A stretch of DNA of 64,000 bases, taken from sequence record NC_061449.1. The stretch is one strand, 5' to 3'. The notes under the pieces were generated by a model, which saw only the letters and a program-made list of their open reading frames with translations, did no database searches and was not told where the DNA came from. Shown piece after piece: positions 21,740-54,633 of this stretch; positions within the stretch are counted from its first letter, which is position 1; each line of letters starts with the position of its first letter. The position numbers and the translations under genes were made by a program.

Positions 21740-22746
21740 TGGTTTCAACTCTCTTTCTCTCTTTACCGCCTGGGTTGCGGTCGAACCGCACACAAGAGCG
21801 TCACATAAAAGGCACACGGCGGAAAAGTGAAAAGTTCCGTGCGTCTTAAATGCAACAGCTCCAGCGAAGGAGGTGGCCCATCGGTGATCTGCGGTGGTTG
21901 ATACACTCTTTAACAATCGCTCTTGTTGTGCATTAAATCGTGGTAGGAACGCGATTGACCGCTAACAAGTCCTATACGATATTTCACTACCCGGAAAAGT
22001 GGGCAAGCTATGGCAGCACGTCAACGGCAGCATGGCGCGGACACACTCCATTGAACATTGTTAAGGGCAATGCTCAACAGGCTGTGAACAGCTTTGACCA
22101 AACGTAGAGTCGCTCGTCGCCCAACATCACTTGAGTATCTCGTCTACGTTCTTTTACTCCCTGAATACCATACAAGGAATACGGCACCCATGAGGGTCTG
22201 CGGATGTTTATCACTCTCAGACTCTTGCAGTTCAATCCTGTACGCAGTGTGTTGAGTCGTCCGCTGGATGACACACTACATACCCTCACCGTGCTGTACA
22301 TCGGTAGGAAAGAGCTGGTGGAAAGTTGTCATGAAAAGACTGCTAGCTGGTAGGCTTGCCTCTCTTCCCAATGTACACTTGCGCCAGCTAATGTACATCA
22401 GGCAGCGTAGGCTGCAATACTGCTGTCCCTGAAAGATTGACCACAGCGTTGAGACTTCGCTCCATCAATCTACGTGCCTAGAGGCGGTTGCCGTGCGTAT
22501 GTCTGAAAAGAATGTAAAACACTGGGCCTTGTGGGCGTCAGCAGCAGAGCAACGGTCTATCACGTGGGTGCCGGGGTTATCCTCACGATTACAGAGCGTA
22601 AGCTCAAACCGGCTGGAGGCTCACATGCTGCCCAGAAATACAGCGCATGAGTTTGATGGATCAGCAAGATGCCACCCGCGAAGAAAGCATCTTACCGCAA
22701 CAGTTAGATATTACTATCTGCAATTTTTATTTACAGATTTTTTTTT
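21740..22746 (+). ncRNA. candidate large (~1 kb) structured non-coding RNA
   Basis: No credible ORF in an otherwise gene-dense genome; more than 10 nested helices of 6-13 bp; G.U pairs and a GNRA loop favour the plus strand; ends at a T9 run. Boundaries and strand are approximate. Confidence 0.6.
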
Positions 22747-24508
22747 AAAACGCTTTACGTTCAACATTTGAATATAAAGTTTCATACGGCTCAGAGTACA
22801 GTTCAGGACCGCGTTGAGCGCGTACAGTCACGTAACCAGTGTGACGGTTGAACGCAGTGATTTCGACTGTAGGCTGTTTAGGCTTGATGGTCGCATAAAT
22901 CGGAGCGTTAAGCGTAGGTTCGTCTGTCTGAATCTTATTTACAGATTGCAGCGCAGCACCAGACAGCGTTGGCAGCTTGAATCGCAGTTCAGCGCGTTTC
23001 TGGCCGAACGCAGCACGAATCATACCGTTTTCCAACTGCACACCGTTCTGCTTGAGATACGCAGCGATGCGACGACCGATACCGGTAAGTTGATCGCGAG
23101 TGCGAGGGTCGAACGTACCTTCGAAGCTGATTGCTTCTGTAGGTTGACGCACAGACAGGTGCAGACCAGTATTGAAGTAGCCTTCGGTCAGCAGACGCAG
23201 GATCTCTTTAACGACCTCTTTCGTGTTCTGATTGATAGCAGCAATGCGCAGTTCTGGCACGTCTACTTTCACAGGGTCACGCAGTTCGGTCTGATTGTCC
23301 ATGTAGCCGAGAGACACATGCTTCGCGTTGGTGTATGTATGCTGCAACACACCAGTAGCGCGAATCAACACAGAGCCGCTTTTAGCGAGGTCATACAGTT
23401 CATCGCTGGTGGTTGTGCTGAACAGGTAGTAGTCTGTAGGCACTGCCATGCGATTGACAGCTTCGACCGCTTTCGTCTGCACTTCTTTCACAGTCTTGCC
23501 GAAGACAACACGACTACGGTTCGGCTGAGATGCAGACACAGGGAAGAACGCACCGTAGACAGCCTGAACGTTCTTCTTAATAGGCTGCTCAGACTGAACC
23601 TTCTTGCCACCCGCCAGTGGAGGCAGCTTAACACCCACCAGCTTGCCTTTAACGATGTGCTTGTTCTCTTTGACAGGCTTGAGCGAGTCAACGAGTTTAG
23701 CCAGCGATGCACCATCAAGAATCTTCTCAAGCGGAACAACAAGGTTCTGCGGCAGATAGTGTTTCTTGCGATACGTGTAGATGACGGTATCTTTCTTGAT
23801 CTGCAAAGGCGTTGCCATGTTGCGGCCAACTACGCCTACAGGCTGGAACGTGTTTACTTTGTCGTCAGCAATTGCACCGAACTGCTTGGTGAACTCAGTC
23901 TGCCCAATGATGTTAGCAACACGCAGATGACCACGAACGATAAACACGATCTTCGGTTCGTCTTTCAAGCGCAGCTCGTAACGGTCACGGTTCAGATAAA
24001 CCATGCTGTACTTGTCGCCCTTCTCCAGTTCAAGGTCATACTCGTCGTTAGCATCATCGACAACGACTTTCTTACCCTGATAAGTAGAGTAGGTACGAGC
24101 ACCAGCAGACTCAGAGGCAATCTCCATTGCCTTGCCTGTGTTAGACAGTGACGCGGCAAAGTCACGCACGGCTGGCATCAGGTCGAATGAAGACGATACT
24201 GCGTATGGTTCGCGCTTGTCGCCGAGGTGCAGATGCACAGCACTTGTGCTGGACATGAAGACGCTAGTACCTACATCTTCGTGCTTACCTGCAAAGTTCA
24301 TGCCACTAATACGTTCGATGACATTTGCATTCAGTGATTCGAAGCGAACATCGCTACCAGCAGCGAAGTCAAAGATTTCACCGTGACGCCAAGCATAGGC
24401 CACGTTGTTCGAACTAAGTCCGACAAACGCATCACCAATCTGACTGACGGTTAACGGCATGATACTCAGATCACGAATGATCGAGGACTGCTTTTTAATG
24501 AGGTTCAT
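22745..24508 (-). CDS. hypothetical protein, probable head-internal protein
   Basis: 587 aa; S-x-S-A motifs (MSSTSA, IASESA) followed by the shared Y-x-x-Y-x-G domain. Confidence 0.8.
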   Translation of the reverse strand: MNLIKKQSSIIRDLSIMPLTVSQIGDAFVGLSSNNVAYAWRHGEIFDFAAGSDVRFESLNANVIERISGMNFAGKHEDVGTSVFMSSTSAVHLHLGDKREPYAVSSSFDLMPAVRDFAASLSNTGKAMEIASESAGARTYSTYQGKKVVVDDANDEYDLELEKGDKYSMVYLNRDRYELRLKDEPKIVFIVRGHLRVANIIGQTEFTKQFGAIADDKVNTFQPVGVVGRNMATPLQIKKDTVIYTYRKKHYLPQNLVVPLEKILDGASLAKLVDSLKPVKENKHIVKGKLVGVKLPPLAGGKKVQSEQPIKKNVQAVYGAFFPVSASQPNRSRVVFGKTVKEVQTKAVEAVNRMAVPTDYYLFSTTTSDELYDLAKSGSVLIRATGVLQHTYTNAKHVSLGYMDNQTELRDPVKVDVPELRIAAINQNTKEVVKEILRLLTEGYFNTGLHLSVRQPTEAISFEGTFDPRTRDQLTGIGRRIAAYLKQNGVQLENGMIRAAFGQKRAELRFKLPTLSGAALQSVNKIQTDEPTLNAPIYATIKPKQPTVEITAFNRHTGYVTVRAQRGPELYSEPYETLYSNVERKAF

Positions 24509-37003: not shown

Positions 37004-37678
37004 TTAGTCCTCTACAATAACAAGCACCGGTCTAACTGCATCGTCGAACTTGAGGAACGTAGCACCAACCAGATAGCCACCATTCTCTACTTGTTTCACA
37101 ACGGCTTTCTCGTAGTCCGTTTCCCACTTCTCACGTTGATTAGGCTTGTAGCCTTCAAACGTTTCTGACGCGTCGTAGTAGTTATACGTGCCACCAGTTG
37201 GCATTGGGATTCGAGCAAGGAACTCAATACGACCAGCGTTCTTAAACTTGGCCTTACGTAGTTCTTGAGTCAGCTTAGTGTTCTCAGCTTTAGAGCCAGG
37301 AACAGCTTTGAATGGTTTCTTCGGTTGTGGTTCTTTAGGCGCAGCAGGAAGTTTCTCACGCGCTGGAGTGTTCTTGTCACTCGCTTTCTTAATGCGAATG
37401 CCGGACACTGTACCAGTGAACGGGCGACTACGGCCAAGCAACGAACGTGCTGTAGCGGCATCGACTTCAAACACTACTGACGGGTCATCCTTATGCAGCA
37501 CATAGAACTTGTTGCGCTTTGCTGCCAAGATACCGAATACATCTTTTTCCTCGATATCGGCCTCATGCTCCTTGTTCTCAATGCTTACCTTGCGCTTACC
37601 TTCGAAGCGATACCAGTCGCAGTCTTGAATCCCTACGATAGGTGTCTTACGTGCGCTTTCGCTCAGTAGAATAAGCAT
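37004..37678 (-). CDS. hypothetical protein, probable head-internal protein
   Basis: 224 aa; N-terminal LLSESA then the shared W-Y-R-F-E-G domain. Confidence 0.8.
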   Translation of the reverse strand: MLILLSESARKTPIVGIQDCDWYRFEGKRKVSIENKEHEADIEEKDVFGILAAKRNKFYVLHKDDPSVVFEVDAATARSLLGRSRPFTGTVSGIRIKKASDKNTPAREKLPAAPKEPQPKKPFKAVPGSKAENTKLTQELRKAKFKNAGRIEFLARIPMPTGGTYNYYDASETFEGYKPNQREKWETDYEKAVVKQVENGGYLVGATFLKFDDAVRPVLVIVED

Positions 37679-41096: not shown

Positions 41097-41471
41097 TTAG
41101 TCAAGTCGTAAGCGAATCAGTGAAGCGCTAGACGATTCGGAATCAACTTCATCGTCTGCGTCTTCTTCGTCTTCAACATCTTCATCAGAGTTGAGACTGA
41201 TAACTTCGTCGTCGTACAACGAGTTTTCTTCCTCGGCATTAAGCTCTAAAGCAGCAGACAACGCGGCGACGGATTCAGCCATACCGGATGCGCCACTCAC
41301 AGAGTTTACCAAGCAAGAAGCCTGGAAGTTATCAGCGAGTTCGCATTCGAGAAAGTCCTCAGTGTCTGGTGCAACAGCCGCTTGAGCAAGCAAGCGAGCA
41401 GCATCAGTCCACTGTCCGTCACGCGCTGCGACGATTGCCAGTGCAGCTAAGGAACCAGATAAAGTCTTCAT
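41097..41471 (-). CDS. small acidic head protein
   Basis: 124 aa; GAGG RBS; acidic C-terminal half with VDSESSS. Confidence 0.75.
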   Translation of the reverse strand: MKTLSGSLAALAIVAARDGQWTDAARLLAQAAVAPDTEDFLECELADNFQASCLVNSVSGASGMAESVAALSAALELNAEEENSLYDDEVISLNSDEDVEDEEDADDEVDSESSSASLIRLRLD

Positions 41472-41524: not shown

Positions 41525-42622
41525 TTAGCCACGGACGGCTTTCGCCACGGAACGCACGTTCGCCAGAGTGAAGGAGAAGGTGCTAGACAGCAACCAACCG
41601 CGGTCGGTGTTGCCCTGGTTCGCGCCGGAAGTCGGGGTAGACTGGGTGCCGCCACGAGTGGTGTACACTGCGTGGTAGTCCTGGTCGGCCAGAACATACA
41701 GTTCGCCGTCCTGCAGAACGCGGTGCTCTGGAGCGCGGAAGCCGTCAGTTACCAGTTCCAGACCCAGCAGAGTACCCAGACGACCAGTAGTGATCAGGTC
41801 GTATTTGCTTACCGGGTCCAGAGCAGAGGAGAACTGATCGTTACCAACGATATCGTTCCAGTAGTCCTGCGCCATCACAGCGGTGCTGACAGGCAGCGGC
41901 CATGAAGACACAGAATTTTTCAGAGTGGACAGCAGACGCGGAGTCAGGTCGCCGTGTACCCAGGTGATAGGGTTAGCGATGCCAACAGCCTGATCACAAG
42001 CGCGTTTCCACAGACGGTCTTCTGCAACCATGATAGAAGACAGGCCGTCTTGCTGTGCGCGATCCAGCAGGTCGCCGTTGATCTGATCCAGATCCATTTT
42101 GCTAACGCGGATGTTGGATTTCAGTTCGAACTCAGCAGGCGTGAACACACGACCGCGGAACTGACGGTAACCGTAGTCGGTAGGACCGGTTGCCATGATC
42201 GCTTCTGCCTGGTGGATTTTCAGTTCGATACGAGCGATATCGCCCTGACGAACAGTAGCGCCTTTACACACTTTGCGCAGCAGGCCAGCACGTTCAGCAC
42301 GGTCTTCGATAGATGCAACGATGGATGCACCCAGAGAAGCCCACTTCTCACCGCTGCTATCAGCAACAGCTTCCTGGAACAGCTCGATCTTCTCAGCTTC
42401 TGTCAGCGGGTTCGAAGCAGAGGTAGAGTGAACCAGTTCGCCGGTCTGGAAGCTGTTCATCAGCTTGCTGATTTGACCCAGCAGATCTTTTTGCGAGTAG
42501 GCGTTGATTTCGCCGGTGCTTTCGCTCAGTGCCAGATCACCTTTCCCGCCAAAACGCAGGTCTTCGATAGGTGCACCAGTACGCAGAGTTACTTTAGCGC
42601 CGCGCATTAAGGAATTGTTCAT
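41525..42622 (-). CDS. major capsid protein (HK97 fold)
   Basis: 365 aa; very strong codon bias; follows the scaffold and decoration genes; FELKSNIRVSKMDL..I.GDLL, G.LGTLLGLELVTD pattern. Confidence 0.85.
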   Translation of the reverse strand: MNNSLMRGAKVTLRTGAPIEDLRFGGKGDLALSESTGEINAYSQKDLLGQISKLMNSFQTGELVHSTSASNPLTEAEKIELFQEAVADSSGEKWASLGASIVASIEDRAERAGLLRKVCKGATVRQGDIARIELKIHQAEAIMATGPTDYGYRQFRGRVFTPAEFELKSNIRVSKMDLDQINGDLLDRAQQDGLSSIMVAEDRLWKRACDQAVGIANPITWVHGDLTPRLLSTLKNSVSSWPLPVSTAVMAQDYWNDIVGNDQFSSALDPVSKYDLITTGRLGTLLGLELVTDGFRAPEHRVLQDGELYVLADQDYHAVYTTRGGTQSTPTSGANQGNTDRGWLLSSTFSFTLANVRSVAKAVRG

Positions 42623-42681: not shown

Positions 42682-43389
42682 TTAGGCGCCGTAAGAGGAA
42701 GACATTTCGACGATCAGGTAACCACGTTCAGTGGTAGGTGCCTGTTTGATCACGCAGCCTTTCAGCACAGTACCGGTTCCGCCGATAGTCAGCATACCGT
42801 TCGGGCCGAGAGTTGGGTGAATCACGTTGTCAGCAGACCAGTCAGCAGTCGGGTCAAACATAGAGGTAGCGATGTTACCCAGTTTGATGTAGCCACAACG
42901 GCCTTCAACGTTAGAAGCCAGACCACCGATAGGAGCATCAGCAGTGTAAGAACGCGCTTCGGTCACAGACAGTTCGTAAGCATACTGGATGCGAACTTTC
43001 TTGCCCTGGTCGTCAGCGTGGAAGTACAGGTCAGCACCCTGAACACCAACAGCACCAGCTTCGGAAGGAGCTGCGTTAGCTTCCTGATCCGCTTTAACGC
43101 CGTCGATTTTAACCAGCAGTGCGCCAGCGTCAGGAACGCGGGAAGCAGTGAATTTTTTGGTCGCGTCGATAACGAACTCTTCAACACGGTTCATGTGCGC
43201 AGGCGGCATAGAGCGAGCCAGAGCGAAACCGGCGAATACTTCGTTAGCAGCACCAGTAGACAGACGCAGGAAAGAGTGACCGCCTTCGCGAGCCCAAACC
43301 AGTGCGACGCCTTCTTCGTGGATTACTTCGCCCGGCAGCAGGTCAGCTTCCTGGGTCTGTACGATATCGGTAGCGTTTTGAAACAACAT
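42682..43389 (-). CDS. head decoration / cement protein
   Basis: Start moved to ATG 43389 (GGAG RBS); strong codon bias; directly upstream of the MCP. Confidence 0.6.
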   Translation of the reverse strand: MLFQNATDIVQTQEADLLPGEVIHEEGVALVWAREGGHSFLRLSTGAANEVFAGFALARSMPPAHMNRVEEFVIDATKKFTASRVPDAGALLVKIDGVKADQEANAAPSEAGAVGVQGADLYFHADDQGKKVRIQYAYELSVTEARSYTADAPIGGLASNVEGRCGYIKLGNIATSMFDPTADWSADNVIHPTLGPNGMLTIGGTGTVLKGCVIKQAPTTERGYLIVEMSSSYGA

Positions 43390-43441: not shown

Positions 43442-45472
43442 TTACATGCGGCGCAGGCGAGCAAGTTTATCTTCATACGAGGAGCCAGTGGAAGCTGAAC
43501 TCTGGGATTCAACAGTGTCGTTACCCTGAGTAAGCAGTTCAGCAGCGGATGCCGGAGCTTTAGGCTGCGCGGTTACAACCTGCTGTTGAACGACCGATGC
43601 GCGTTCAGCACTCACGGTGCCGGCGGCTGCGTCGATTGACTCAGAGATTTCGTTCTGGGCGACTTCGGACTTGCTCATGAGGTCCATCGCTTTTGACAGC
43701 GAAGTAGTCAGGAAGTCTTTGCCGTGTGCAATAAACGCACGTTCAACCAGAGCGCGAGGCTCTTTGATACCAGCAGCAGACAGTGAGCTGCACAGGCTAT
43801 CGACGATTGGGTTGCGTACATCGCCCCAGAAGTTTTTCGTAACACCCAGCTGGGATGCAGACAGGGCAGCGATGAAGCGTTCAGTATAAGCTGAGGTTGC
43901 TTCTTCGATAGTGCCGGTAACGTTCGCGGTAGCTTCGCTAACACGCGCGTCAGACTGCGCAGCCAGAAGTTTTTCGACAGGCATTTCGATCTGATACGGC
44001 ATAAAGCCGAATGCTTCACAAGTACCAGTCACACCAGTCTGATTCAGAGAGTGTGATACTGCACGAATGAAATTATCAGTTGCGAAGGATTTCACCGCAT
44101 TTTCTTCGCCAACTGCATTAGATACAGAAGCGAGAGTAGCGCGAGCAATCGGATGACCGTCGTAATACATGTGAACGGTTTCCAGCTTGCCAGTTGCGCG
44201 GCTCAGAGCTACCAGAGCAGGGTCCAGTGTGCCGTGTTGAGCTTGCGCGGTAGACAGGCTGTCGAAGGTGCGAGAGACAACGCCGCTTTCAGAATCAATG
44301 TCGTCCTCGTCATCGAGGTCGAGATCGTCTTCTTCCAGATCTTCTTCGTCGTCGAACTCGTCGTCTTCGTCAGAGCTGGATTCAGAGTCGATATCCTCTT
44401 CATCGTCCAGGTCTTCTTCGTCGAGGTCTTCTTCGTCGAGATCTTCTTCGTCGTCCTCGTCAGAGCTGGATTCAGAATCGAAGTCTTCGTCTTCTTCGAG
44501 GTCTTCATCATCTTCCAGATCTTCGTCGTCAATGTCGTCCAGATCGTCTTCATCCAGATCTTCATCGTCGAGGTCGTCTTCGTCGTCGATATCATCGTCT
44601 TCATCATTAGATGATTCAGAATCGAAGTCTTCGTCGTCCGAATCATCTTCGTCGTCGAGGTCGTCTTCTTCAATGATATCAATGTCGCTATCGTCGTCGC
44701 CGGACTGAGATTCAATCGGCTCGTCGACCAGAGCGGCAGAACAGTGCGCACAGAACACAGGCTCTTCGTCAGAGCTTACAGTGAATGGCTGTTCGCAGTT
44801 AGCGGAGCAGCTATAGATGTGCGCTTCGACTTCACCGTCAGCAGAGGACAGCGCGGCCAGAGCTTCTGGAGCTTCCTGCGCTTCGCAATTCTCTACAGCT
44901 TGACCGGTGTACGGGTCGAAGTTTACGGCAGTAGCAGCGTTAAAGCTACCAGTACCAGACAGCGCAGTGAACGCGTGTGCGTTGCTCAGTGCCAGAGCGA
45001 AGTTGCGTTTAGCAGCTTCGGCAGTTTCACCAGTAGCAACCAGACCAGCGTGTTCAATTTGTTCGTCAGCAGAAGCGGACTCGGCCAGGAATTGAGTTAC
45101 GCGGTCGTCAGTGATTTCTGACAGGTCAGCAGAGCACGATGGGCAGCAGCCCTGAACCAGTGCAGCAGAGTCAGAGATAACGTGGCTACCACAACCATCA
45201 AGACAGATGGTGTAATGAGCTTTCACGTCACCGGCAGCAGACTGCGACTGGACTTCGGCGCGCTCAACCAAATCAGGATGCTCTTCCAGCAGTTCTTCAC
45301 CGCCTTTCGGATTGTAGAGGTCTGTGCCACTCTGCGAAGCAAAGCCTACACCATCAGAGGACCCGAAAATCATCAGGTTCTGACCGAGTGCAGTGCGGCG
45401 AAAGTTCTCTACTGCCTGATTATGGTTTTGACCGACACACAGGATACCCGCGAGTTGGGTAATCTTTGGCAT
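43442..45472 (-). CDS. prohead core / scaffold protein with two Zn-ribbon-like modules and an acidic linker
   Basis: Start ATG 45472 (GAGG RBS); Cys4 modules; ~145-aa D/E tract; ten S-x-S motifs; C-terminal LARLRRM. Confidence 0.7.
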   Translation of the reverse strand: MPKITQLAGILCVGQNHNQAVENFRRTALGQNLMIFGSSDGVGFASQSGTDLYNPKGGEELLEEHPDLVERAEVQSQSAAGDVKAHYTICLDGCGSHVISDSAALVQGCCPSCSADLSEITDDRVTQFLAESASADEQIEHAGLVATGETAEAAKRNFALALSNAHAFTALSGTGSFNAATAVNFDPYTGQAVENCEAQEAPEALAALSSADGEVEAHIYSCSANCEQPFTVSSDEEPVFCAHCSAALVDEPIESQSGDDDSDIDIIEEDDLDDEDDSDDEDFDSESSNDEDDDIDDEDDLDDEDLDEDDLDDIDDEDLEDDEDLEEDEDFDSESSSDEDDEEDLDEEDLDEEDLDDEEDIDSESSSDEDDEFDDEEDLEEDDLDLDDEDDIDSESGVVSRTFDSLSTAQAQHGTLDPALVALSRATGKLETVHMYYDGHPIARATLASVSNAVGEENAVKSFATDNFIRAVSHSLNQTGVTGTCEAFGFMPYQIEMPVEKLLAAQSDARVSEATANVTGTIEEATSAYTERFIAALSASQLGVTKNFWGDVRNPIVDSLCSSLSAAGIKEPRALVERAFIAHGKDFLTTSLSKAMDLMSKSEVAQNEISESIDAAAGTVSAERASVVQQQVVTAQPKAPASAAELLTQGNDTVESQSSASTGSSYEDKLARLRRM
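44270..44705 (-). repeat. low-complexity D/E tract with four imperfect DSES units
   Basis: Repeated GAC/GAT/GAA codons; F/I-DSES-S/G recurs four times. Confidence 0.9.
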
Positions 45473-45550: not shown

Positions 45551-46684
45551 TTAAATTTTTCTGCTATCAATGTCAGTTTGTGGAATATATCTGTTTTCGA
45601 AGTATTTCGCTACTACCTCGACGCCGTTTAGCGTATAAACGTTGCGTAAGCTATATCCCCAAACCATCAGTTCAGCAAGCGTTGCGAAGTGCTCTGCGGG
45701 TACTGATTTAATGGTCAACGCGTTCATAGAATCCGGGTGGATTTTCTTGCCGCGAATGGCCTGATCAAACTTCATGCGTTCTACGTTACGTAGCATCGTA
45801 TGGTCCACAAAGTGGGCTAATTCATGCGTAATAACGTGCGCCATACTCAGGCTATTATAGCCGCCGAGTAGCTGCACTAACTGTGCAGGATGGATTGATA
45901 TCGCACCGTACAGGAAACCGTGTACGCGGTATGTTGCAATGTGACTACCACCACTATCCGAGTTAGCTTTCAGCAGGCCAACATACAGACGTTTGAATGG
46001 TAGTTCAAAGTTCAGGCCGATGCCGGGCATAACGTTTTCCTGAATATCTTTAAGTACATAGTCAGGAGGGCTAATACCGTTCTTCTCAAGCGTGACACCA
46101 GGAACACGCAAGTCATCCATGCCCAATATTTCGAGATGCACACGACCACACTTAGGAACAGGCTTGACAGCGTAGTTATTGGGCGTACCACCAGGATATA
46201 TTGCTGGTGCGTACTGCAATGGTTTGAAATTACCAAAATCAGGCATATCCATTAGACGACGCTGTGCAGCTTTCATCGAGTCAGGAGTGTCTTCGCCTGG
46301 GCGATCGTCATTCCCCGTTGCCAATGGCTTAGGTTTAGACTCAGGCTCTGGTGATTTCTCAAGTTTAACAGGCTTTGGTTCTGGTGCTGGTGGCGCAGGC
46401 TTCTTCTGCTTCTCCTCGTAAGGAGTGAAGTCGAAGTCCGGCTTAAAGAGAGCGTCAGGTTTCGCAGTGAATGGGCGACTGTTCTGAACGAGCTTGTCAC
46501 CGTCTTCTCCACTGATTGCATATGCCTGATCGTATTTAGGATGGGCAATGTAGTACAGGTCATCGCTTACTTTGAGAAGGCCAATGACCTCACGCGATTC
46601 CATATGGACACCGTTTGAGATCATTGCCGCCTGACCCAGATAGCGATAGTACGTGTAGTCCCCTATAGCTAAACCTTCTGGCAT
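45551..46684 (-). CDS. HExxH zinc metallopeptidase-like protein
   Basis: Start ATG 46684 (TGATG overlap, AAGGA RBS); VITHELAHFVDH...EHFA; Pro/Lys-rich linker; N-terminal shared domain. Confidence 0.75.
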   Translation of the reverse strand: MPEGLAIGDYTYYRYLGQAAMISNGVHMESREVIGLLKVSDDLYYIAHPKYDQAYAISGEDGDKLVQNSRPFTAKPDALFKPDFDFTPYEEKQKKPAPPAPEPKPVKLEKSPEPESKPKPLATGNDDRPGEDTPDSMKAAQRRLMDMPDFGNFKPLQYAPAIYPGGTPNNYAVKPVPKCGRVHLEILGMDDLRVPGVTLEKNGISPPDYVLKDIQENVMPGIGLNFELPFKRLYVGLLKANSDSGGSHIATYRVHGFLYGAISIHPAQLVQLLGGYNSLSMAHVITHELAHFVDHTMLRNVERMKFDQAIRGKKIHPDSMNALTIKSVPAEHFATLAELMVWGYSLRNVYTLNGVEVVAKYFENRYIPQTDIDSRKI

Positions 46685-47463
46685 CAGGCCATCCTTAATA
46701 GATGTTCTTTGTACGTTGCAGCACACGCGAACGCTGGGTCATCCACGCTACTACATTCGAAGCCGGTAAGCATCTTACAGTCACGATACACCAGACGGCC
46801 TGTACGCGCATCGAGATAGGTCGGTTTGTTGAACGCTGTGTGCGAACAGAAGTTACGCATCTTAGGCGTTACCAACTGACCGCAGATACTGCACTTATAA
46901 GCACGATACGTTGTGCCTTTGCTGTACGTGTTCAACTCACCACTCAGGATTCGGTCGCAGCGCTCTTTACAACGCGTACGGTCGAATGCCAGCAGCAACG
47001 TCAGACGAGCGTGGTCGCCACGGAAGTTCTTGAGCTTGGACAGGTTGCTGTCGAAGATCATACCCATGGCCTGACGGTAGTCTTTATTGTTGTGCTCGAT
47101 GAACGTCGGCTTACCAATGAACGTCTGATAAGCAAGACGACCTTGGTCAGGGTTGAACGTTAACCACTCTTGCAGACTAAACGCATCACCGTTAGTGTTC
47201 GGCAGCTCAGTGATGTTCACCGGAACAGGAACGATGATATAGTCGCGGATATCGCGTGACGTGTTATACTGCTCGGCTGCTTTCGGCAACCACACGTTCA
47301 CATCAAGGTTAAAGGAGCCTGTCTGAATACCGAAGCGAGAAGCATCCACACGAATAGATTTAGCTGTACGGCTAACATCTTCCTTGTGCATGTCAATCGC
47401 GTTCAATCCGACGAGGCCCATGTCTGACGTATCAAACGATTCAGACTTTACTGACTGGGTCAT
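46684..47463 (-). CDS. prohead (capsid maturation) serine protease-like protein
   Basis: Start ATG 47463 (GGAG RBS); PNTNGDAF, GKPTFIEH, YSKG..CSICG pattern; synteny protease-scaffold-MCP. Confidence 0.7.
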   Translation of the reverse strand: MTQSVKSESFDTSDMGLVGLNAIDMHKEDVSRTAKSIRVDASRFGIQTGSFNLDVNVWLPKAAEQYNTSRDIRDYIIVPVPVNITELPNTNGDAFSLQEWLTFNPDQGRLAYQTFIGKPTFIEHNNKDYRQAMGMIFDSNLSKLKNFRGDHARLTLLLAFDRTRCKERCDRILSGELNTYSKGTTYRAYKCSICGQLVTPKMRNFCSHTAFNKPTYLDARTGRLVYRDCKMLTGFECSSVDDPAFACAATYKEHLLRMA

Positions 47464-47897: not shown

Positions 47898-48776
47898 TTA
47901 ACCTCGCAGAGCACCACGAGCCCATGACTTAGCGAGGGCCAGAGTCATACGAGCAGGGTTGTGCAACTTGACTTCACCTTTATGGACGGCAGTGAATGGT
48001 TCATGCGCGTTCTCACTGCGGCCCGAGCGATATGCGGCTTCGTTGAAACCATCGAACAGAGTAACTACCCAGCCAGTAGATTTCTCAGAGCACTCACCAC
48101 ACGCTTTATCCCACGCAATCTTACCGCAAACACGACCACCAGCATTAACTGCATAACTGATTTGCTCAGTGCCTTTATAAATGTCAGGCGACTTGATGGT
48201 CTTGAAGGTGACACGCGACGCAGACTCAGAGCGAGGAATCATCTTCTCTTTCAGAGTTTCAACATCCAGTGATGACCAGAAAGATTCAAACAGTGCTGCA
48301 AACTTCTGTTCGATAGGAAGATTGATAGCGTTGATTTGCGCGATGGTGCTGGAGCTATCGTTGAGTACTCGGTTGATAAAATACCCGCCGATAATCACAG
48401 GCATCTGTGTCCCCTGCGAGCCCGCCGTCAGACCAGACTTCTTGCAGTAGATTTCAGACAGGCCGATAGCCAGACGCGCAAGAGTCATGAACGTCTGCTT
48501 CTCGGTCGAGTTAGCGATCTCTGTGTAGATACGCGCAGCGATAGCAGGGACAACAGTACGCTTTGCTACACTCAGAATATCTTCTGGTGTGATTGACTGG
48601 CCGAGCTTCTTACGCGCAGCCAGTTCGAAGGCGTTAATCAGGCTTGCTTTGTTCGCTGGCGTCAGCGACTCCCCTAACTTGATAGTCGTCTGCTCGGAGC
48701 TGCTCACTATGTTCGGAGCTGGAGCTGTCTTGAGTCTTTTCACTCCCGACGTTGACTTCATTCGCTGTACTGTCAT
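47898..48776 (-). CDS. hypothetical protein, probable head protein
   Basis: 292 aa; AGGA RBS; MKSTSG, IVSSSE and PRSESA motifs. Confidence 0.75.
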   Translation of the reverse strand: MTVQRMKSTSGVKRLKTAPAPNIVSSSEQTTIKLGESLTPANKASLINAFELAARKKLGQSITPEDILSVAKRTVVPAIAARIYTEIANSTEKQTFMTLARLAIGLSEIYCKKSGLTAGSQGTQMPVIIGGYFINRVLNDSSSTIAQINAINLPIEQKFAALFESFWSSLDVETLKEKMIPRSESASRVTFKTIKSPDIYKGTEQISYAVNAGGRVCGKIAWDKACGECSEKSTGWVVTLFDGFNEAAYRSGRSENAHEPFTAVHKGEVKLHNPARMTLALAKSWARGALRG

Positions 48777-49881
48777 TTGTTTGTTCCTGAGTAACAGGCT
48801 GCATGTGACTCAACAGCCCAGAGTTCTGAATTGCCTCATTCAAATCTTCACCACGATGAATGGTGAGTTGAGCGAGGTAGTTGAGAGCAGGTTCAACCAT
48901 ACCGAGATTACGACAGCCCCAATAAGCTGTTTCGTAACATAGGTCTAAATTAATAGAGGTCTGGTCAAACAAGAAACTTTTTGGATTCTGCTTGGCTGCA
49001 TCAATACCCTGAATAGCCATGCCTGTAGCATTGATCATATCGTCGTGACGATAGAAAATGTCGGCGAGCATCGCATAGCACTCAATGCGATCAGGGCGGA
49101 ACGCTACCGCACGATAACAGGCAGCAATCGCTTCCTGTGTGAACCCCTGCTTGAATGTCGCTTTCGCCAGCTCGATGTTAGCGATAGCAACATAGTCAGC
49201 CCAGCGAGCAATGCCAGCAAGACGATCTACTTCACGACGAGCATCGTCCAGCAGGTCAGCACGTTCGTTATAGCTTACCGCATAGCAGAGTTCACGCGCA
49301 TAGTAGAAGCTGCAACGATCATCGTGCGGGTAATCACCCACATCCTTACCAAGCTCAAGCAGATAACCGCGAGGCTTCGTGTGGTCAGGGTAGTGGTCAG
49401 TTGCAAACGGCGCCTCGATGGTACGCAGGTTCTGGCCAGGCTTACGAGAAGACAGGACTTCATGAGCACGATACTTCCAGAAGTAAGAGCGACGACGATA
49501 CGCTTTCATCTGCTGGTAGTGACTATCACCGTTGCGCATCAGAATCCAAACTGCTTCGGCATGTTTAATGTGCTTCGTGTTGCGTAGCGTTTCAACCCAA
49601 TTAGGGTCATCGAAACGTTCGTCGATATCGAGCCACACAACGAGATCATCTTCGGAGAATGGCGTAGCGGCCAGTTCACGACTCGCGCCCAGATTACGTT
49701 CTTCTGACACGTCGAACATATGATACAGGTTAGGGTGCGTGAACGCAGAGATGATGTTTGTGGTTTGGTCTTCGCTGCCCGTGTCTACGATACTGATTGC
49801 ATCAGCACCAGCAACGTGTTCCAACCACTCACGCATATTCTTTTCTTCATTGCGACAGATAGCCGCTACGCAAATTCTCAT
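48634..49881 (-). CDS. GT2-family glycosyltransferase with TPR repeats
   Basis: AICRNEEKNM, IVDTGSEDQT, WLDIDERF (DxD), HEVL, DHYPDH; TPR-like helices in the C-terminal half. Confidence 0.9.
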   Translation of the reverse strand: MRICVAAICRNEEKNMREWLEHVAGADAISIVDTGSEDQTTNIISAFTHPNLYHMFDVSEERNLGASRELAATPFSEDDLVVWLDIDERFDDPNWVETLRNTKHIKHAEAVWILMRNGDSHYQQMKAYRRRSYFWKYRAHEVLSSRKPGQNLRTIEAPFATDHYPDHTKPRGYLLELGKDVGDYPHDDRCSFYYARELCYAVSYNERADLLDDARREVDRLAGIARWADYVAIANIELAKATFKQGFTQEAIAACYRAVAFRPDRIECYAMLADIFYRHDDMINATGMAIQGIDAAKQNPKSFLFDQTSINLDLCYETAYWGCRNLGMVEPALNYLAQLTIHRGEDLNEAIQNSGLLSHMQPVTQEQTNDSTANEVNVGSEKTQDSSSSEHSEQLRADDYQVRGVADASEQSKPD

Positions 49882-52803: not shown

Positions 52804-54633
52804 TTAACTGGCGATAGGGTCTTTGTTGACGGGGAAGTCTTCGGTCATATCGAGCACACGATTGAACAGCTTAGGTGCCATGTCTTTCACATGTTCTGCA
52901 TAATCGAAGAGATTCTGCTTACGCGCACGGTTCACACGAACCTGACGTACCTCATCAGGGCTGTTGGTAATGTCGTACAGCGTATAGATGACGATGTTAT
53001 CTGAGGTCGAGTGCGTACTGACTCGGACGATAACCCAATCACGATTGAGCTTCGCATCTGCCTTGAATCTAAGCACGTCACCTTCTTCTGCTTCCTCGGC
53101 GCGATGCTGAGGAGTAGATTTGTTGGCGGCTGCAATCTTCTTAGCAGTCTCTTTCGCTTCCTGCTCTGCGGCAGCAACGTCTGAGTCCGTGTCTTCGTCA
53201 GCTTCGGTTTCGTCTACAGCGTCAGAGGTGTCAGCGGATTCATCTTCCTCTGATTCCTCGTCTTCTCCATCTTCACCTTCGCTATCAGCTCCTTCGTCGT
53301 CAGCGGCGTCATCATCCACAGATTCATCGTCTGCGTCTGAATCGGTGTCCCCATCATCTGCATCATCAACATCTGTATCACTATCGTCAGTGTCTTCTTC
53401 TGCATCAGGGTCTTCCTCTTCTTCGACAGGCTCAGCGGCTTTCTTACCGGCCTTAGCACGAACTTTCTTAGGAGGCACGTCTTCTTCGTCCTCTTCTGGT
53501 TCGTCAATGTCTGACAGGTCCAGAGCAGGTTCATCAATGTCTTGCGAATCATCTCCGCCAAACAGAGAACCTATAGAGTCTTCAATGTTGAACGCATCGC
53601 CAGCGAACGGACTACGCGCAAGAATATCTTCGAGCTTCTGCTCGTCGAGGTCCGCGTCGATTTCGACTTCTTCGATTTCATCATCCAAGACTTCTTCCTC
53701 GATTACGCGAATACGCTTGCCGCGCCTGTCAACACCGTCTTCGTAGACAGTACGCACTTCGGGCTTATCGATCTCGATTTCACCAGAGCGCACTTTCTTA
53801 CGCAGCGAACTAAGCTCAGACTCGCGCTCTCGCTTCTTCCTGTTCGCTTCTTTCTGTAGCTCTTTGCGTTGCTGCTTTTGCTCAAGGATCTTCGCATTGT
53901 TTGCGAGTCGTTGGGCTTCCTGTTCTTCTTCGGCAGAACGTCGACGGGCGCGTCGTACTATGCGGCGATAGGCTTTAACGTCATCAGCAGTCAGAACACC
54001 TTTAGGCCAATCGTTGAACGGCAGGATGTTGGTATCATGCACGACCAAGTCGTATTGAGCGTCATCGACTTTAAGGAACATTCCCTCGGAGTTAATGATG
54101 ATACCGCCTTTGCCTTGCCGCAAGAAGCGCACACCAATCATGTCGTTCTTATACAGCTTGGTCATACCCTTAGAAGTCTTCACAGGGTATTCAGGGCTTG
54201 CAACCATACGCCACTGATAGTTGTCGAAGTTAACTCCGTACACAGATTCAGATGGGACACGACGAGGCGAGAATCGTGCGGCATCGAACTGACTGCGGTT
54301 GAGTTGACGCTCCATCGTTTTGGCACCAGCAGTCTTAGTACGCCCAGAGACCTCACGATTAACAACGTCAGGTACTTTGCGCAACTTCGATGCACGTTCC
54401 ATCAGGAACAGTCCAGTAGACTTATCAAGAGGGAAGTCAACATGCGGCATATCAGGGAAAATCAGAGTGTAGCGTCCGCCATTACGCAGCGGGAGAATAC
54501 CGAAGATATCACCTTCACGAATCATGCGTTTATGAGTTCGCTGGGATACTTCTTTTCCGCGTGAACCTGTATACTTCATCCACGCGTACTTCGATACGGC
54601 ATCTTGATAGGATGCAGATACGGAAAGTACCAT
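52804..54633 (-). CDS. acidic virion/head-internal protein with two copies of the shared domain
   Basis: MVLSVSAS start; coiled coil; long D/E tract; alternative GTG start at 54660. Confidence 0.75.
   Translation of the reverse strand: MVLSVSASYQDAVSKYAWMKYTGSRGKEVSQRTHKRMIREGDIFGILPLRNGGRYTLIFPDMPHVDFPLDKSTGLFLMERASKLRKVPDVVNREVSGRTKTAGAKTMERQLNRSQFDAARFSPRRVPSESVYGVNFDNYQWRMVASPEYPVKTSKGMTKLYKNDMIGVRFLRQGKGGIIINSEGMFLKVDDAQYDLVVHDTNILPFNDWPKGVLTADDVKAYRRIVRRARRRSAEEEQEAQRLANNAKILEQKQQRKELQKEANRKKRERESELSSLRKKVRSGEIEIDKPEVRTVYEDGVDRRGKRIRVIEEEVLDDEIEEVEIDADLDEQKLEDILARSPFAGDAFNIEDSIGSLFGGDDSQDIDEPALDLSDIDEPEEDEEDVPPKKVRAKAGKKAAEPVEEEEDPDAEEDTDDSDTDVDDADDGDTDSDADDESVDDDAADDEGADSEGEDGEDEESEEDESADTSDAVDETEADEDTDSDVAAAEQEAKETAKKIAAANKSTPQHRAEEAEEGDVLRFKADAKLNRDWVIVRVSTHSTSDNIVIYTLYDITNSPDEVRQVRVNRARKQNLFDYAEHVKDMAPKLFNRVLDMTEDFPVNKDPIAS

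Follow-up and report, generated by a model that had tools for sequence, protein, structure and literature searches.

T4 gp21 and phiKZ gp175 are head maturation proteases of the same scheme, shared by giant and T4-like phages. To our knowledge, T4, phiKZ, 201phi2-1 and SPN3US are the only phages for which experiments have established a readable cleavage code of proteolytic head maturation, and in all of them the cut follows Glu. In T4, the gp22-type core protein is acidic, contains many protease sites and is the source of acidic internal peptides. The T4 internal proteins carry very short N-terminal targeting peptides that end in the protease motif, and they are packaged into the head and delivered to the host. 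For SPN3US, A-x-E is the sequence after which the protease gp245 cuts, with a preference for V at P4 and for S at P1', and the enzyme processes the major capsid protein (MCP), the portal, the abundant ejection proteins and itself, thereby removing N-terminal propeptides of 20-254 residues (PMC10052503). Here, we analyse a 64-kb stretch (the window, 64,000 nucleotides; record position = window position + 62,000) of the genome of Erwinia phage pEa_SNUABM_17 (NC_061449.1, Alexandravirus, a jumbo phage of 263,916 bp with the host Erwinia amylovora), in which a short Ser-x-Ser motif recurs in the scaffold-like protein gp139 and in other proteins of the head.

With moderate confidence, we read this motif as the recognition site of the protease gp141, which would most likely cut after the second Ser and in this way process scaffold, MCP, portal, its own N-terminus and a set of N-terminal leaders. 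As in SPN3US, the motif is found in the scaffold or core protein, at the propeptide junction of the MCP, in the portal, in the protease and at the N-termini of candidate packaged proteins, here at the level of sequence only. Because the carriers of the motif are the classes of protein processed in SPN3US, it can by analogy be read as a prohead-protease code. What would be new is a specificity variant of the known head maturation scheme of giant phages. Unlike in SPN3US, T4 and phiKZ, the conserved positions are Ser, or Ala in relatives, and not a Glu at P1; Glu is only one of several residues at the free position x. The MCP is small (365 residues, with a propeptide of 68) and the predicted portal propeptide comprises about 50 residues, compared to 111-254 residues in SPN3US. 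The proteases also differ, as gp141 gives no sequence match to those of SPN3US, T4 or phiKZ.

The motif in the scaffold-like protein gp139

All annotated genes of the window except one are encoded on the minus strand. In the order of transcription, the head module consists of gp144 (family-2 glycosyltransferase), gp143, gp142, the protease gp141, gp140, gp139, gp138, the MCP gp137 and gp136. The order protease-gp140-gp139-gp138-MCP is kept in seven enterobacterial-clade genera. In Lu11, HRDY3 and RSL1 the protease gene lies upstream of the scaffold and MCP genes, without gp140. The N-terminal region of gp139 is followed by two CxxC...CxxC zinc-ribbon modules and then by an acidic repeat region; a conserved C-terminal domain (residues ~408-658) comes next, and the protein ends in a basic tail. 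It resembles T4 gp22 in being highly acidic, in being coded between protease and MCP, and in its many sites and predicted acidic peptides. Unlike gp22, it contains the two zinc-ribbon modules and a conserved C-terminal domain of 250 residues, and the two proteins share no sequence or profile relation.

We defined the strict motif as [FVLIMWY]-x-S-x-S-[AGST]. In gp139 it occurs 11 times where 0.61 matches are expected. Neither global shuffling nor local shuffling in blocks of 40 residues, with 5000 trials each, came to this count of 11 (maximum 5). The enrichment over a Ser-rich background that the original prediction of a capsid code required is borne out, for a protein with a Ser content of 10.9%. 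S-x-S irrespective of context is found 23 times versus 8 expected. Nine of the ten scaffold sites first proposed fit the strict motif; the tenth, LAESASA, is displaced from the register by one residue, and its conservation is restricted to Alexandravirus and Y3. Two more strict matches, VISDSA at 98 and IYSCSA at 219, are located inside the zinc-ribbon modules and are probably structural. The four [FI]DSES[SG] sites of the acidic region are not independent, because this region contains a tandem repeat of ~90 nucleotides whose unit encodes the motif and whose copy number varies between relatives. The number of independent sites in gp139 is therefore about 6-8, which is still far above chance.

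Conservation follows the same pattern. In an alignment of ten scaffold orthologues, of which those from the seven enterobacterial-clade genera are 51-88% identical, both Ser residues of the sites at 46, 76, 255, 405 and 656 are kept in all or nearly all of these genera, and both x positions vary. The HRDY3 orthologue is annotated as two adjacent coding sequences with one break. We also scanned all 400 residue pairs at spacing i,i+2 in each orthologue against local shuffles. S.S is the top pair in six of six enterobacterial-clade scaffolds (pEa_SNUABM_17, Y3, Yoloswag, JA11, fHe-Yen9-02 and pEa_SNUABM_5; z 4.6-5.7). For the NCTB scaffold, S.S is not the top pair, contrary to expectation, and eight hydrophobic-x-S-x-S sites are present. 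Conservation depends on the spacing as well: of the 23 S-x-S pairs within gp139, 9 persist in Y3, Yoloswag and JA11, the three relatives in which we judged the conservation of all window hits, compared to 2 of 33 Ser pairs at spacings 1, 3, 4 and 5. Outside gp139 the counts are 17/78 for S-x-S and 35/312 for the other spacings. These comparisons support a functional rather than a compositional origin of the motif, as far as sequences can tell.

If cut at its nine conserved or repeat sites, gp139 would be chopped inside the prohead into a zinc-ribbon fragment of 179 residues (~18 kDa), a C-terminal fragment of 251 residues (~26 kDa), four very acidic peptides (30-48 residues, 67-75% Asp+Glu) and short pieces from the two ends. 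The PaBG orthologue of gp139, gp82, is not among the 14 identified Coomassie-stained virion bands (PMC7412058), which is weak negative evidence. The protein is named 'ATPase' in RefSeq and in PHROGs and '60S ribosomal-like protein L2-A' in the GenBank record of PaBG. We found no Pfam match and no PDB sequence match for gp139; the label 'ATPase' is unsupported and probably a low-complexity artefact.

Exchange of serine and alanine between clades

In the three Pseudomonas-clade scaffolds (PaBG, Lu11 and HRDY3), the top pair at i,i+2 is A.A, with z of 3.8-5.2. At the columns of the scaffold sites 76, 255, 394 and 405, PaBG and/or Lu11 have A-V-A-S, A-T-A-S, A-T-A-G, V-A-A-S or V-Q-A-S; strings of this kind are present at four of four sites in Lu11 and at three of four in PaBG. 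This exchange of Ser and Ala at the same columns is the strongest single argument, and it would fit a protease pocket that reads side-chain size. As Ser can be replaced by Ala, size and not the hydroxyl group would be what is read, which suggests small-x-small as the subsite rule of the protease. The strict Ser-specificity of the original prediction has to be given up at this point. A prohead-protease code is retained as a reading for the scaffold linkers, the MCP junction, the protease N-terminus, the portal extension and the leaders, where a protease of this kind would be expected to cut. A clean split into a Ser clade and an Ala clade was considered and rejected, since PaBG uses both residues.

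We place the putative cut after the second Ser because both Ser positions are conserved (Ala in relatives), x is free and the following residue is small. P3 and P1 would then both be Ser, P1' a small residue and P5 hydrophobic. A cut after the first Ser, which would bring the hydrophobic residue to P3, ranks lower: the position behind the first Ser is free, conservation is seen at the second Ser and at the small residue next to it, and Ala or Val substitute at those columns in relatives. Signal peptidase I follows a rule of small residues at -3 and -1. The sites described here are similar by functional analogy only, with small P3 and P1, free P2 and interchangeable Ser and Ala. They differ from signal peptidase I sites in that assembly is cytoplasmic, sites are internal, no hydrophobic core is present and the enzyme fold is a different one.

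Capsid protein, portal and protease

The AlphaFold2 model of the MCP gp137 has a mean predicted local distance difference test (pLDDT) value of 82.5 and matches mature HK97-fold proteins and encapsulin folds over 270-300 aligned columns. The sole PDB sequence match, 6wkk, aligns from approximately residue 73, and inside the chain the pLDDT falls below 50 in a single segment, residues 68-70. A cut at the junction site of the motif in this segment would remove the 68-residue propeptide and leave a protein of 297 residues and 32.4 kDa, with a computed loss of 18.3% of the mass. S66-T-S68 is S-x-S in all seven genera, with a shift of one residue in JA11 and fHe-Yen9-02 and an indel-rich linker following it. 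In Lu11 and HRDY3 the junction reads A-T-A-S. Among 116 homologues (34-94% identity), the segment corresponding to G61-A85 contains S.S[SAGT] in 52 cases versus 7.4 expected and [SA].[SA][SAGT] in 85 versus 47 expected. For PaBG, the mass of the MCP falls by ~20% on maturation (PMC7412058), which lends indirect support to cleavage, a function separate from targeting, and to cleavage only. At the second MCP site, LALSEST, PaBG keeps S-x-S, and in Lu11 and HRDY3 only the second Ser is exchanged for Ala.

The portal protein gp006 contains two sites, at residues 38 and 49. In 100 distinct N-termini of portal homologues (46-97% identity), we find hydrophobic-x-S-x-S in 96 versus 22 expected and the strict motif in 73 versus 9.5 expected. 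The distance from the motif to the conserved core behind it has a median of 10 residues (interquartile range 8-12), and the basic extension in which the motif lies is hypervariable elsewhere. This extension of about 50 residues would be trimmed off the portal. Some metagenomic portal homologues are 813-1084 residues long and have intein-associated domains, two of them PF14528 together with PF14890 and one PF14890 alone; the portal gene therefore hosts inteins in part of the family. Directly upstream of the portal gene and outside the window, gp005 is labelled 'DNA ligase', and it is a zinc-ribbon protein of 71 residues with two strict sites in its first 28 residues.

For gp141, we found 70 homologues. 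An alignment of 58 of them shows no variation at H124 and S181, nor at C191 and C206 of an insertion in which C194 and H208 are at least 90% conserved. This Cys191/Cys194/Cys206/His208 cluster looks like a zinc-binding insertion. The AlphaFold2 model of gp141 (pLDDT 85) has T4 gp21 (5jbl) as its three top PDB matches, with a probability of 0.63-0.80 and E of 0.06-0.16, and these are the only specific PDB matches. Against the predicted structures of BFVD it gives 92 matches with E <= 0.001 (down to 1e-8), many of them named prohead serine protease, COG3740 or XkdF, and PaBG, RSL1 and phage G gp19 are among them. The agreement with predicted structures is strong, and the model thus points to a prohead-protease fold. 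In its predicted fold, gp141 is similar to the HK97 gp4/COG3740/XkdF proteases and to the gp21-assemblin fold, and its invariant His and Ser are candidate catalytic residues; it differs from the former by the lack of a Pfam S77 or S78 match and by the Cys/Cys/Cys/His insertion. We know of no small-x-small specificity described for the HK97 gp4/COG3740/XkdF proteases. The protease would also trim its own N-terminus, where all seven genera share S-x-S-F and x is occupied by E, H, Q or K. The residue two places before the first Ser is hydrophobic in six of the seven and Gln in fHe-Yen9-02.

N-terminal leaders and predicted head cargo

Outside the window, the record was scanned as separate stretches that were not merged. 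Among 257 called open reading frames (ORFs) of at least 100 residues, 11 have a motif start within residues 1-12, where 1.3 are expected and 1000 shuffles gave at most 7. Each of the later bins of 12 residues contains at most 6 motif starts. One of the 11 is a spurious call. The ten real leader proteins are gp131, gp147, gp172, gp174, gp182, gp192, gp193, gp194, gp196 and gp249, and in ten of ten the motif ends in S-x-S-A. Leaders of 7-17 residues ending in this way resemble the capsid-targeting sequences of T4. They are unlike those in that the leader sequences are unrelated and the cargo would include KMPT-N proteins and a helicase-like protein of 1950 residues. The genes of gp192, gp193, gp194 and gp196 are clustered beside the endolysin gene (record 166325-169345), with gp172 and gp174 as near neighbours. 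The leader proteins outside the window match neither a Pfam family nor a PHROG of known function.

The helicase-like protein is gp174, annotated 'DNA helicase'. Its PaBG orthologue has 1969 residues and a leader that ends in S-x-S-A. Band 1 of the PaBG virion was identified by mass spectrometry as a 221-kDa 'RuvB helicase-like' protein (PMC7412058, Table 1). This band corresponds to the gp174 orthologue, so that in a relative one protein with a leader has been shown to be part of the virion.

Four paralogous proteins with the KMPT-N domain (PF20294) are encoded in the window, namely gp140, gp131 (37004-37678), gp147 (52804-54633) and gp114 (22745-24508), with scores of 98.6, 74.6, 65.4 and 66.8 bits at a cut-off of 28.9. 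In gp131, gp147 and gp114, the domain starts 4-10 residues past an S-x-S-A motif. In PaBG, the leader of the KMPT-N protein gp269, which is related to gp147, is of the type A-x-A, and that of the NCTB homologue is S-x-S-A; both proteins match PF20294. PaBG gp83, a virion protein with an A-x-A-type N-terminus, was considered as a further KMPT-N protein; it has no Pfam match and is not counted as evidence. On the proposed reading, leaders of 7-17 residues would be removed from about ten proteins beyond scaffold, MCP, portal and protease. These proteins, with three KMPT-N proteins and gp174 among them, are predicted to be head-internal or ejected.

The motif as a predictor

All motif strings listed in the original prediction are present where it had placed them. 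As a bare string, the motif does not predict head cargo. In the other 56 proteins of the window, the strict motif occurs 15 times versus 8.6 expected, about 1.8 times chance, a count reached in 9 of 300 shuffles, and five of the listed sites are not conserved. Kept with varying x are both MCP sites (33-35 and 66-68), the protease site (5-10), those of gp131 (4-9), gp147 (2-7) and gp114 (130-135), and PRSESA. VDSESS (41097, gp136), MKSTSG, MLSLSQ and MSSTSA are not kept and, like LAESASA of gp139, are best taken as chance, with no conservation past close relatives. About half of the sites listed outside the scaffold look like chance. MKSTSG in addition needs the long start at 48776 of its ORF instead of the RefSeq start at 48488. 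The site of the NUDIX protein (NVSLSA) is kept only in the two relatives that align. In the whole record outside the scaffold, the strict motif is found 52 times versus 27 expected. The discrimination comes from position and conservation and not from the bare motif: the motif is predictive only in combination with a position at an N-terminus or a domain junction and with conservation.

Taken over the whole lineage, we put forward a wider proposal, tentatively and as somewhat less than an even bet. The Lu11/PaBG/NCTB/Dickeya/Erwinia jumbo lineage and many metagenomic relatives would use a small-x-small prohead protease, with a Ser-x-Ser/Ala-x-Ala dialect that drifts in step across the substrates, and a leader of 7-17 residues would tag the head cargo in a way readable from sequence, including KMPT-N proteins and the helicase-like protein. 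If this is true, the head-internal and ejected proteins of a large and poorly annotated group of jumbo phages could be listed by sequence alone. Functions are unassigned for approximately 87% of the relevant PHROG families, and family annotation is absent altogether for the leader proteins. The lineage would also offer a natural case of a protease and its substrates shifting specificity together, Ser in one clade and Ala in another, that is approachable by comparison alone. Database labels would be corrected, for example 'ATPase' for the scaffold-like protein and 'DNA ligase' for the zinc-ribbon protein beside the portal gene. Packaging and trimming of gp174 and the KMPT-N proteins would bear on what these phages deliver into the cell alongside their DNA.

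Weighing the protease reading against alternatives

From the patterns described above, we infer that the sites are cut, which bond and which enzyme are involved, and that the leaders target proteins into the head. Several points weigh against this. The compared sequences are related, so the shuffle counts overstate independence. Inheritance within a paralogous family may reduce the three KMPT-N leader sites to a single observation, and the gene of gp131 lies among tail-tube genes. Two strict matches inside the zinc-ribbon modules of gp139 would need protection from cutting. The match of gp141 to the solved structure of T4 gp21 is weak (E 0.06, template modelling score 0.34-0.50), and gp141 has no Pfam match at E <= 0.01, Peptidase_S77 and S78 included, and no PDB sequence match. 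With gp140, a second peptidase candidate is encoded inside the head module. The comparison between clades is not uniform either: in PaBG, the 221-kDa protein has S-x-S-A and the scaffold contains three strict sites, the MCP junction of NCTB is S-x-x-S-A, and the RSL1 scaffold is enriched for neither S.S nor A.A in the pair scan. Because of this last result, the code may not extend to Mieseafarmvirus. Finally, no mature N-termini or semi-specific peptides are reported for this phage group in the literature consulted. The PaBG data consist of gel bands and tryptic maps, and the publication on Dickeya AD1/JA contains no virion proteomics.

Two alternatives are unlikely to a similar degree. In the first, the same sites are cut by gp140, an HExxH metallopeptidase with a KMPT-N domain, either throughout or only in the KMPT-N and leader proteins. 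The position of its gene between protease and scaffold genes in all seven enterobacterial-clade genera speaks for it, as does the KMPT-N domain that directly follows the motif in three proteins, given that the Pfam description of PF20294 states that this domain is typically fused to metallopeptidases. The orthologue in pEa_SNUABM_5 is annotated 'peptidase family M34'. However, PaBG, Lu11 and HRDY3 have equivalent small-x-small sites without a gp140 gene at the locus, and the MCP of PaBG is processed. The serine protease, on the other hand, is found in every member of the group examined: it is annotated in the seven genera and in HRDY3, homologous in Lu11 and RSL1 (31-38% identity) and a structural match in PaBG. 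The motif is not present in gp140, its N-terminus included.

In the second, the motif would serve for docking or targeting by binding to scaffold, portal or protease and would remain uncut, so that the leaders stay on the mature proteins. Conservation and N-terminal position speak for function and not for cleavage as such, and in the MCP the conservation of the LALSEST block extends to RSL1, without a full switch to Ala-x-Ala. Docking alone does not account for the mass loss of ~20% of the PaBG MCP, which matches the junction site, nor for the absence of gp82 from the identified virion bands. The sites are located in disordered linkers, and small-x-small with a free x is typical of protease subsites.

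Modification of Ser without proteolysis, by phosphorylation or by O-glycosylation through gp144, is very improbable. The seven enterobacterial-clade genera, Lu11 and HRDY3 do have a family-2 glycosyltransferase gene a short way upstream of the protease gene, and the acidic D-S-E-S-S is similar to acidophilic kinase sites. But in relatives that likewise encode the glycosyltransferase, several of the Ser columns hold Ala instead, the module contains no kinase, and modifying an apparently discarded protein or leaders of seven residues would have no obvious purpose.

Least probable of all is that the motif is a by-product of Ser- and acid-rich low complexity and repeat amplification, as the Ser content of gp139 and the four sites in its acidic tandem-repeat region might indicate, or that the leaders are substrates of the host signal peptidase, whose rule their small -3/-1 residues resemble: local shuffles never reach the observed count, enrichment and conservation are confined to i,i+2, and six or seven gp139 sites lie outside the repeats, and the leaders of 7-17 residues mostly contain 2-4 hydrophobic residues without a core of signal-peptide length, the scaffold and MCP sites are internal, MCP and portal are among the carriers and a helicase-like protein of 1950 residues is not exported. 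The recognition of the motif by gp141 thus remains the reading that we prefer.

Features of the window and neighbouring genes

The features discussed above are collected in Table 1.

Table 1. Motif sites and the genes that carry them, in window positions (minus strand denoted by -).
Feature	Position	Strand	Remarks
gp114 internal site IASESA	24104..24121	-	residues 130-135; KMPT-N 140-201; conserved
gp131 leader site LLSESA	37652..37669	-	residues 4-9; KMPT-N 20-84; kept in 6 relatives, x = E, A, V, T
gp136 site VNSVSG	41292..41309	-	residues 55-60; conserved
gp137, MCP	41525..42622	-	365 residues; HK97 fold; PHROG 2522
MCP junction site VHSTSA	42416..42433	-	residues 64-69; predicted cut between S68 and A69
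MCP site LALSEST	42515..42535	-	residues 30-36, in presumed propeptide; block conserved as far as RSL1
gp139	43442..45472	-	676 residues; acidic, scaffold-like; pI (isoelectric point) 4.05; 25% Asp+Glu; between protease and MCP
gp139 site VESQSS	43496..43513	-	residues 654-659, directly before the 18-residue basic C-terminal tail
gp139 site FDSLST	44249..44266	-	residues 403-408, start of the conserved C-terminal domain
gp139 acidic repeat region	44282..44626	-	four [FI]DSES[SG] sites: FDSESS 283, FDSESS 331, IDSESS 361, IDSESG 392
gp139 site 3, IESQSG	44699..44716	-	residues 253-258, boundary of zinc-ribbon and acidic region; A-T-A there in PaBG and Lu11
gp139 site 2, VQSQSA	45236..45253	-	residues 74-79; A-V-A-S at the same alignment columns in Lu11
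gp139 site 1, FASQSG	45326..45343	-	residues 44-49; S-x-S in all 7 enterobacterial-clade genera, x varies
gp140	45551..46684	-	KMPT-N domain and HExxH metallopeptidase-like C-terminal part
gp141, head maturation serine protease	46684..47463	-	259 residues; PHROG 18299 'head maturation protease'
gp141 N-terminal site VKSESF	47434..47451	-	residues 5-10; candidate self-processing site
PRSESA site	48219..48236	-	ORF 47898-48776, residues 181-186 of the long reading; S-x-S conserved, hydrophobic residue two places before the first Ser absent
gp147 leader site VLSVSA	54613..54630	-	residues 2-7; KMPT-N 16-80; conserved

The FDSLST site reads F-D-S-[LI]-S-small in all seven genera, with V-A-A-S in PaBG and V-Q-A-S in Lu11 at the same columns.

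The protein gp138 (42682-43389) contains no conserved S-x-S site. Its PaBG orthologue, gp81, is a virion protein found in several gel bands (PMC7412058). As its gene is flanked by those of the scaffold and the MCP, gp138 may be a decoration or cement protein. The glycosyltransferase gp144 is encoded at 48634-49881; such a gene was not seen in the PaBG or RSL1 stretches compared. For gp143, the RefSeq start at 48488 gives a protein of 196 residues. This start is probably too far downstream, because the longer reading of the ORF 47898-48776 aligns over its whole length with AD1 (88% identity) and the relatives are annotated as products of 244-295 residues.

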